NCBI GenBank assembly: GCA_039096225.1
Contig: JBBPEB010000017.1
Location: 434,001-498,000, forward strand
Direction of reading: 5' to 3'
DNA: 64,000 nt
From: Blastocystis sp. Blastoise
Lineage: Eukaryota; Protista; Bigyra: Opalinata
Shown: positions 42,024 to 45,000 of the stretch, in pieces
Layout: the number at the start of each line of letters is the position of its first letter
How positions within the stretch are numbered: the first letter of the stretch is position 1
Position numbers and translations under genes: made by a program
The notes under the pieces: model-generated
The model's input: only the letters and a program-made list of their open reading frames with translations
What the model was told of the DNA's origin: nothing
Database searches by the model: none

Positions 42024-45000
42024 TTAAAGAGAGAAACCAGTAGAAGTTCTCATAATTTGGAAGTTTGTATTATGTTTCATATTAGCCTATATATATATAA
42101 TATTTATATTATTATCTATATATAAAATTTATATTATTATTATATATATATATAATATTTAAATTATTAATGTATATATATATACAAGAGGTTTATATTC
42201 TCTACTTAAAATCTTAACAGTCATTTCATTAAGAGATTTAATATCTTCTTCAACCTATACATATATATATATATATATATATATATATATATATTATTAT
42301 TATTATTATTATTATTATTATTATTATTATTATTATTATTATTATTATTATTATTATTATTATTATTATTATTATTATTATTATTATTATTATTATTATT
42401 ATTATTATTATTATTATTATTATTATTATTATTATTATTACATACAGAAGACTTGAAAACAAAATCAATATCATTCTTCTTTTCATTAGCCATAATAACC
42501 GTGGGAATAAACATATGTCCAGGAATAGATTCCTTCTTATCACTATATACATATATAATAGAGGCGCCACATCCACCAACAGCGGTCATTAATTCAGTAT
42601 AATCACAAGGCTCATAATACTTCATTATATGTACACCTATATATATATACATAGATATAATATATATACAAATGTATAGAATATAGAAAATAATAATAAT
42701 ATAATATATACCAGGTTTAGTATTATAAAGATATTCACCAGTTTTAATAGTAGGTTCGACAGGAATAGTATTCCCAATTGTGCCTTCAATGAATTCATTT
42801 GATTGGAGGAGTTGATCCCGTTCAGGAATAACAACAATACCCCCATTAGCAACAATAGTATTGATCATATTAGCAATAGAGAGAGAAGCAGAAGCAGGAA
42901 TAGGAGTACTAGTATTCGATAAGAACGAGAATACCAATCCTTTTATAGAAGTTCCCGCCACAGGAATTGGCGCGGGAAGAGACTTAATTGTAGGGAATAA
43001 ATAATGGCAAGCCTATATATATATGTATATATGTATATTATTACTATTTTTAAAATAATATGATAATTTAAAATATGTTTTTAATTTTATAAAAGCGCAA
43101 ATATATATATATAGATATATATATCAATTTCACCATAGAATAATAATATTAATACTACTAATAAATTTATATATATATATACCTTATCAATAGTATTCTT
43201 AATACCCATATCTTTTTGAACACTAGCTTGACCAAAATCATCAATATTAATATTATAATGTTCCTTCAAATAAGCCTTAAAATAAGACAATAAGGTCTTT
43301 TCACATCCATGTTCCACCATAAATCCACAATATACATGAGGATGAAGAAGATGGCCACAAGCAATACGATCATATGTATATATACCATCTATTGGTTGAT
43401 TACCATATGCTTCTCCACATCCCTCTGTATGAACCAATGGGACTGACCAATTGAGAACACTATTGATAGTAGGCACGTGATAAAGAGCTATAAATAGAGA
43501 CAGTAGTATATATAGAGAAGAATATATAATATATATAACACATATAATATCTTTTTATGAATATCTATATACCTTCATCAGTATAGCCTAAATATTTATT
43601 CTTTTCGACATCGAATTCTTCACGCATGCTACTTTCAACGACACTACTAATGGCACGTGCTATTTCACCACTACAAAGAGAGGTAGGATAGACGATGCAA
43701 CCTGCGTCAGGAACAACTGTATACTCAGCATCATCACCGTGATTATGAATATTTTTAACCTTTAAACCAGTATATTTATATTCAAAAGGATAAATAGGTT
43801 GTTTAGTTTCATAAGGAATTCCCGCGGGAATCTTATCCTTTAATTCAGTTTCATATTCAGCCATTGTTTTATGAGCCCAATTTCTCCATATTTGCATCTA
43901 TATATAGATTAATATATTGAATAGATATTTAATAAATATAAATATTAATAAATATAAATATATATATAATATATATATTAATATATATATACTTGAGAAT
44001 GTCCAGCACGTTCACCGAAAGTGAGTTCTCCACTGGCCACGTGAATAGCATGTGTATAGAGTCTATTGGCTAATTCTTCTAATGGTGTTCCATCAAGATA
44101 TTCACCAGCGTTGAAATCTAAATCATTCGCTAAACGATGATAACGACGAGAAGTTGTAAGTAATTTGATAGTGTACAAAAATTATTAAGGTAATATATAA
44201 TATATATTAATATATTAATATATAATAATAATAATAATAATAATAATAATAATAATAATAATAATAATAATTATATATATATATATAGGATATAGGGACA
44301 AAAGGGAAATTAGTAATAGACCCATTTCCCGTGGAAAACATAATTACATTACAACCACTAGAGACCTATATATATATATAATAATAATAATAATAATAAT
44401 AATAATAATAATAATAATAATAATAATAATAATAATAATAATAATAATAATAATAATAATAATAATAATAATAATAATAATAATAATAATAATAATAATA
44501 ATAATAATAATAATAATAATAATAATAACTAAAATAATAATAATAATAATAATAACTATAACTATAATTATTTTACAATATATACTTGACCACAAACACT
44601 TTCTAAGTCATTTCCAGGGGAATCCATGAATTGATATCCTTTAACAGGATTATAGTGAGCACCATAAGCAATACAAGCATCTAAACGTTGATCTGCAGTT
44701 TTCTTCATAGCAGCACCAAGTGATTTAATAGCAATATTATATAAACCACGATAAAAATTACCTCCAGATGGATTATTTTGAGCAGAAATACCGTGGTTAT
44801 TTGCATTATGTTCATAAGTAGCCTGCATTTTCATAAATAATTTCGCAGTTTCAACATCACGACATTTATTAGTTATATATCCTTCAGCACCTATTAATTC
44901 ATCTATATATATATATATATATAGAATAAATATGATATTTAGAAATTGTAATATATACTAATCATAATAAGTAGAATATAAAAATAAAATAATAATTCAT

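Follow-up and report, generated by a model that had tools for sequence, protein, structure and literature searches.

A probable U12-type AT-AC intron shared by Blastocystis-like lineages in a long-form UxaA/GarD-family gene of Blastocystis sp. Blastoise

The U12-type introns of animals and plants carry the donor consensus RTATCCTT and the branch-site consensus TCCTTRAY, and their removal depends on the U11, U12, U4atac and U6atac small nuclear RNAs (snRNAs). Here we report on an intron with matching donor and branch-site sequences and with AT-AC ends, intron 6 of a UxaA/GarD-family gene of Blastocystis sp. Blastoise. It lies at positions 44173-44293 (minus strand) of the window, that is, the whole stretch of 64,000 nucleotides (nt) of contig JBBPEB010000017.1 that was analyzed. 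The closest described systems are those of Blastocystis itself. In subtype 1 (ST1), U12-type introns number 346, and the four snRNAs and seven specific proteins of the minor spliceosome are all present (Gentekaki et al. 2017, PMC5608401), and Larue and Roy (2023, PMC10639083) reported 253 minor introns with a mean length of about 42 nt, 77% of them AT-AC and 49% in phase 0. Since both studies describe such a system in the genus, a working minor spliceosome in Blastoise is to be expected and would not be new. Likewise, a single intron of this type is ordinary for Blastocystis, in which hundreds of AT-AC minor introns are already known.

In its AT-AC ends, its ATATCCT donor, its phase 0 position, the very short distance between branch site and 3' end and the accompanying snRNA set, the intron under study resembles those of ST1 and ST7 of the same genus (PMC5608401, PMC10639083). 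It differs from them in its length, 121 nt being about three times the reported mean as a result of microsatellite inflation, and in its derivation from the tortoise-associated clade, to which it extends the minor-intron system. Furthermore, it is conserved in ten lineages; of 12 minor introns of ST1 that were compared, by contrast, 11 were reported as lost in B. hominis (PMC10639083). Blastocystis sp. Blastoise is apparently the Russian-tortoise isolate Rus-B, whose genome (33.3 Mb, 33 scaffolds, 23.1% guanine plus cytosine [GC]) is described, in a paper on eight Blastocystis assemblies, as having longer introns, numerous regions of low complexity and stop codons encoded in the genome; this paper makes no mention of U12 or minor splicing (PMC10690189). 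One intronless HSP90 of the assembly analyzed here is 100% identical to the hypothetical protein WA158_005611 of Blastocystis sp. Blastoise.

Read on the minus strand, the intron begins with the U12-type 5' splice site ATATCCT (44287-44293). Near its other end stands the branch-site motif CCTTAAT (44184-44190), followed by nine bases and the terminal AC at 44174-44173, so that the putative branch A is located 12 nt from the 3' end. Between these signals, two microsatellites, (TA)8 (44287-44272) and (ATT)16 (44271-44224), together occupy 44224-44287 on the minus strand; the second of them is the (TTA)n expansion that an earlier note on this DNA, made from the sequence alone, had pointed out. 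The 121 nt contain a single G, five C and no AG. Read without splicing, they would put the downstream sequence out of frame, with a stop codon after 28 codons.

The flanking exons fix the boundaries of the intron independently of its splice signals. Exon 6 (44294-44365, minus strand; 24 codons, VSSGCNV..NFPFVP) is 96% identical to its counterpart in the orthologous locus L006 and matches positions 149-172 of the Pfam GD_AH_C profile (E 3e-5); exon 7 (43993-44172, minus strand; 60 codons, TIKLLTT..AGHSQ) matches positions 173-232 (E 1.2e-10). Because these profile positions adjoin, the AT-AC join is exact: with the exons searched singly, the profile runs unbroken and residue-exact across 172|173. 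The two motifs are not rare in the window (20 occurrences each of ATATCCT and CCTTRAY when both strands are counted), and we put the odds of both U12 signals falling by chance exactly at the boundaries set by the protein profile at about 2e-7. The sequence features by which a U12-type intron is recognized are thus found at this site: a donor of the /RTATCCTT class, a branch site of the TCCTTRAY class close to the 3' end, and an exact in-frame AT-AC join. The remaining 11 introns of the gene are all of the GTATAT..AG type, in line with the GT-AG ends that the earlier note had given for those it had traced. A GT-AG alternative for intron 6 was considered and rejected; since the intron is devoid of AG, there is no such alternative that keeps the frame, and use of the first AG downstream destroys the frame and removes conserved residues. 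The protein searches yielded no protein of Blastocystis sp. Blastoise, whether annotated or derived from transcripts, that crosses the junction. With a probability of roughly 0.88, a joint figure for the whole of the best explanation laid out below, we regard the 121-nt stretch as a genuine minor-spliceosome intron, and the identification made in the earlier note is thereby upheld.

The strongest evidence at hand comes from orthologous introns in other lineages. Exon 5 and a related natural open reading frame (ORF), when used as queries, retrieved many exon-level ORFs from metagenomes, in which ..NFPFVP continues into I-S-F/L/Y, as is seen when ATATCC is translated. For comparison, we fetched nine loci that carry the intron and one that does not; the metagenomic loci were assigned indirectly, by the kinship of their genes, by their tiny introns and, in the case of L008, by the TGTTTGTT motif. 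In all ten carrier loci, the window included, the intron occupies the codon boundary VP^T[ILVM]K and starts with ATATCCT, and in each of the nine orthologs outside the window the donor reads ATATCCTT. All orthologs carry a CCTTAAC-like motif at a distance of 6-12 nt from the 3' end, a spacing at or below the 10-15 nt usual for animals and plants. Six copies end with AC (the window, 121 nt; L006, 52 nt; L018 and L019, 40 nt each; L022 and L024, 43 nt each), three with AA (L008, 77 nt; L021, 70 nt; L023, 48 nt) and one with AG (L020, 69 nt). Otherwise the ten copies, with lengths of 40-121 nt and locus GC contents of 25-62%, cannot be aligned; the nine orthologs range over 40-77 nt and 35-62% GC, and the window copy is the longest owing to its (TA)8 and (ATT)16 repeats.

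Since most of these lengths are not divisible by three and the exons downstream are conserved, the intron must be removed in all carriers. The pattern reads as the footprint of selection on the U12 signals alone. In effect, the ten lineages provide a natural mutagenesis series in which ATATCCTT and the 3'-proximal branch motif appear constrained, and length (40-121 nt), composition and 3' dinucleotide appear free.

In a tree built from a region of about 170 residues, the Blastocystis-like sequences form one clade (support 96/91) that splits into a trichotomy: an intron-less pair, the window gene together with L006 (100/98), and nine other carriers (99/96). As carriers are present in both supported clades, the intron is older than the split of the window-gene clade from the nine-carrier clade. 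It is thus old within the genus, at least ten Blastocystis-like lineages having it at one and the same codon boundary. The nine-carrier clade probably comprises mammal and bird subtypes. Only L008 is shown to be of human type among its loci, and the TGTTTGTT poly(A) motif is enriched in L008 alone; the absence of this enrichment from the window agrees with the genome paper (PMC10690189). The intron-less lineage is represented by L010 (Logan contigs, 5574-6497; proteins P0002 and P0452), which lacks introns 4, 5 and 6 and keeps intron 7. It may have lost the U12-type intron or may have branched off before the intron was gained; both fit the trichotomy. L010 is AT-rich (27% GC), which is near the 27.0% reported for Proteromonas lacertae, a likeness in GC only.

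The nearest relative of the window gene is L006:4757-7823 (GCA_019973095.1, contig JAIFII010000071.1), with 45-96% identity per exon. It has ten of the 11 compared intron positions in common with the window gene, lacks intron 9 and contains one extra intron within exon 10. Its introns measure 28-52 nt, and the locus has a GC content of 43.5%. If L006 belongs to the tortoise-side clade, introns would have been lengthened in the AT-rich lineage and not shortened elsewhere; the direction of this change was left open in the genome paper (PMC10690189).

The best explanation for these observations would run as follows. U11 would pair with the ATATCCT donor, U12 would pair with the branch-site motif CCTTAAT (branch A at 12 nt from the 3' end), U4atac/U6atac would complete the catalytic core, and excision of the 121 nt would fuse ..NFPFVP exactly to TIKLL... 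Selection appears to have preserved nothing but the donor and the branch-site motif, and in the Blastoise lineage repeats of (TA)n and (ATT)n have inflated the middle of the intron, a usual condition in this AT-rich genome.

To look for the RNA components of this machinery, we searched the genome assembly (33.3 Mb in 34 contigs) with Rfam models. U11 was matched at 62.9 bits (cut-off 39) and U6atac at 63.8 bits (cut-off 33; L002:1501-1617, minus strand, C21:544821-544937). With U12 and U4atac as candidates below cut-off, the genome thus appears to encode all four minor snRNAs, in support of the earlier suggestion of a functional minor spliceosome in this organism.

A number of observations weigh against the proposed explanation. 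Position +8 of the donor is A in the window intron and T in all orthologs. The U12 match, which is full length and has an intact branch-binding GUAAGGAAA box, scores 46.8 bits, under the Rfam cut-off of 53. U4atac gave no match in the genome at default Rfam search settings, and a relaxed search returned one full-length candidate at 29.7 bits, far under the gathering score. We accept this weak candidate solely because its nt 2-13 and nt 37-48 of the U6atac candidate are complementary without a mismatch over 12 bp. This pairing corresponds to the expected stem II, both strands of which differ from the Rfam consensus; furthermore, its UGCUGAC can pair with GUUAGCA of U6atac as stem I. In a shuffle control of the duplex energy of the U4atac/U6atac pair, one shuffle equalled the observed value. 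The U6atac candidate reads GAGCCGAGAGAAGG where the Rfam consensus is GAAAGGAGAGAAGG, so that GCCGA replaces the AAGGA box. Normally, the AAGGA box is the pairing partner of CCUU in the U12 donor, and such textbook pairing is not evident here. The presence of GCCGA despite an invariant ATATCCTT donor may reflect a shifted pairing register or a reliance on U11 and proteins. Finally, the timing of the gain of the intron rests on a trichotomy and on outgroups that are few or intronless.

With respect to its origin, we favor, with some reserve, a gain of the intron on the lineage leading to Blastocystis, before the sampled radiation. No intron is present at the U12-site codon in any inspected non-Blastocystis homolog (of the small number of outgroups, several are intronless); given this absence and the AT-AC phase 0 type of the intron, a gain on this stem is the more parsimonious history. 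The earlier note had the intron arise de novo after acquisition of the gene from bacteria. The presence of an intron at the same site in ten Blastocystis-like lineages contradicts an origin specific to this organism, and what survives of that proposal is a de novo gain somewhere on the Blastocystis stem. Lineage-specific creation of U12-type introns, our best guess for the origin of this one, has a precedent in Physarum polycephalum, whose minor-intron expansion is considered an exceptional case (PMC10639083). In contrast to that mass expansion, the present case concerns one datable site and, if the stem gain is true, would document cleanly the birth of a minor intron, an event seldom recorded. 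The combined reading, in which a stem gain at a codon without an intron in the other eukaryotic copies was followed by fixation before the two carrier clades separated, selection on only about 15 nt throughout the radiation, drift of the 3' dinucleotide among AC, AA and AG, and service by a U6atac without the canonical AAGGA box, is put forward tentatively, at a little less than even odds.

The alternative that fares best is that the intron is ancestral, having been present before Blastocystis, possibly as an early-eukaryote U12-type intron, with later losses from the other lineages sampled. U12-type introns are generally old and rarely gained (PMC10639083), the gene retains two other old intron positions, and the intron-less lineage could represent a loss, given its placement in the trichotomy. 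On the other hand, the intron is missing at this position from every available non-Blastocystis homolog; in Monosiga, the U12 site itself is uninterrupted and a GT-AG intron lies three codons further downstream, and no intron breaks the ORF of either the MAST-4-like or the P0021 gene. Moreover, its phase 0 AT-AC character, which sets it apart from the classic minor introns of animals and plants that avoid phase 0, resembles the Blastocystis-specific set that is possibly recent according to Larue and Roy (PMC10639083). We therefore consider an ancestral intron unlikely, yet deserving of consideration beside the stem gain.

Far less plausible is a recent acquisition of the gene from bacteria by Blastoise or its close kin, followed by de novo creation of the U12-type intron, as the earlier note had supposed when it described the gene as bacterial-type and probably laterally acquired. 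The UxaA family is indeed mostly bacterial. At E<=1e-20 we obtained 6110 matches to the long form, most of the named ones bacterial, with thousands of relatives in Poribacteria, Verrucomicrobiota, Lentisphaeria and Chloroflexota, and the genus is known for bacterial gene acquisitions from the genome paper (PMC10690189). The lack of the U12-site intron from Monosiga and from the intronless homologs would also suit such a scenario. However, the long form, with about 860-1000 amino acids and an identical layout, is found in the choanoflagellates Monosiga and Barroeca, in Symbiodinium and another dinoflagellate, in two Diplonema species, in a MAST-4 stramenopile and the labyrinthulomycete Mucochytrium, and in Ditylum and Chrysotila, so that diplonemids, a haptophyte and a diatom are represented as well. 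The gene is also not among the cases of horizontal gene transfer named in the excerpted text of the genome paper (PMC10690189).

The phylogenetic data likewise speak against a recent import. In a tree of 112 rows, every labelled bacterium falls into one cluster (93 in the Shimodaira-Hasegawa-like approximate likelihood ratio test), and the Blastocystis clade (90) stands outside this cluster among eukaryote-containing groups, with an unresolved backbone. In an approximately unbiased (AU) test on 46 rows, a grouping of Blastocystis with the stramenopile-labelled sequences was not rejected and scored slightly better (p-AU 0.58). Holding the eukaryote-labelled rows alone together was rejected (p 0.001), a result that is uninformative because this constraint forces probably-eukaryotic unlabelled rows outside.

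The positions of the GT-AG introns also bear on the age of the gene. When the Monosiga protein was mapped onto its own locus, 19 introns were found, two of which match introns of the window gene in position and phase (both phase 0). The first, at AGH.Q^[VM]QIWRNW, corresponds to intron 7 (43898-43992, minus strand; AGHSQ^MQIWRNW in the window), a position occupied in every Blastocystis-like locus that was checked; the second, six residues past the conserved IQ.D.G motif, corresponds to intron 9 (43013-43182, minus strand). In Monosiga brevicollis these introns lie at L017:4699-4780 and 6411-6520. With 12 and 19 introns distributed over about 2700 sites, only about 0.08 coincidences would be expected by chance. 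Hence none of the hallmarks of a recent lateral transfer was found: the gene is not nested among bacteria in the trees, the family is not absent from eukaryotes, and introns are shared. The shared Monosiga positions, the protist homologs and the placement in the tree together suggest that the gene, wherever it came from in the first place, has long been present in eukaryotes and was not imported recently from bacteria. The account of a lateral transfer thus has to be corrected in favor of a long eukaryotic history of the long-form UxaA gene. An ancient bacterial source for the whole eukaryotic set may still be compatible with the poorly resolved backbone. The occurrence of the U12-type intron in ten lineages adds to the case against a recent event, and we judge the probability of the latter to be very small.

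Rare AT-AC introns that are removed by the major (U2-type) spliceosome do exist, and the window intron might in principle be one of them. Its donor, ATATCCT(T), differs from the ATAAGT class of U2-like donors, the orthologs conserve a U12 branch motif a short distance from the 3' end, and the variation of the 3' dinucleotide between AC, AA and AG is of a kind tolerated by U12-type introns, all of which leaves U2-type removal scarcely credible. That the stretch is no intron at all, but a sign of a disrupted (pseudo)gene or of faulty assembly, can be dismissed almost entirely: the reading frame is open and conserved in each of the 13 exons, ten independent assemblies show the interruption together with conserved splice signals, and the exons are present in RNA runs.

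The host gene extends over 42024-46504 on the minus strand, with its ATG at 46504 and its stop codon at 42026-42024; it has 13 exons and 12 introns and is present as a single copy in the genome. Its affiliation with the UxaA/GarD family is indicated by the domains PF04295 (GD_AH_second), matched by exon 2 and, just below the cut-off, by exon 9, and PF20629 (GD_AH_C). Positions 1-232 of the latter are tiled by exons 4-7 (exon 4, 1-44; exon 5, 46-147), exon 6 with its 24 residues scoring below the curated cut-off when taken alone. This combination of domains and the TGNGS..FPFVPTIK motif are shared with bacterial UxaA (altronate dehydratase) and GarD (galactarate dehydratase). The window gene differs from these in the length of its product (a long form of about 900 amino acids), in a second GD_AH_second-like module, in a C-terminal extension, in its introns, and in that no SAF domain is detected in exon 1, which has no Pfam match at E<=0.1 and aligns to the N-termini of the homologs. 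The C-terminal family motif FQ.x.R..TG.SL lies at 42077-42027. Two further GT-AG introns contain long (TAA)n arrays, intron 5 (44366-44585, minus strand), which is absent from L008 and L010, and intron 11 (42292-42440, minus strand). The GC content of the window is 17-27% per 2 kb.

Indirect signs of expression of the host gene come from two sequencing runs. One, probably of RNA, contained 0.57 of the sampled words, of which a fraction of 0.645 is exonic; the other, a polyA gut metatranscriptome, contained 0.31 of them. The product is predicted to be a sugar-acid dehydratase-like enzyme of the UxaA/GarD family. Because polygalacturonases are reported for tortoise isolates in the genome paper (PMC10690189), a role in the catabolism of pectin-derived hexuronates in the herbivore gut seems plausible. 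The earlier note further conjectured that dependence on the minor spliceosome could limit the rate of this enzyme. A literature search combining Blastocystis with altronate or galactarate returned nothing relevant.

Elsewhere in the window, the ORF at 31737-32552 (minus strand) gave a sub-threshold match to glycoside hydrolase family 95 catalytic domain (E 1.5e-5; 24.6 bits, the cut-off being 27); this alpha-L-fucosidase-like family is among those said to be expanded in tortoise isolates. In the genome at large, three full-length HSP90 genes (C22:583021-584577, C33:318683-320236 and C21:169064-170719) are intronless, and other genes are intron-rich.

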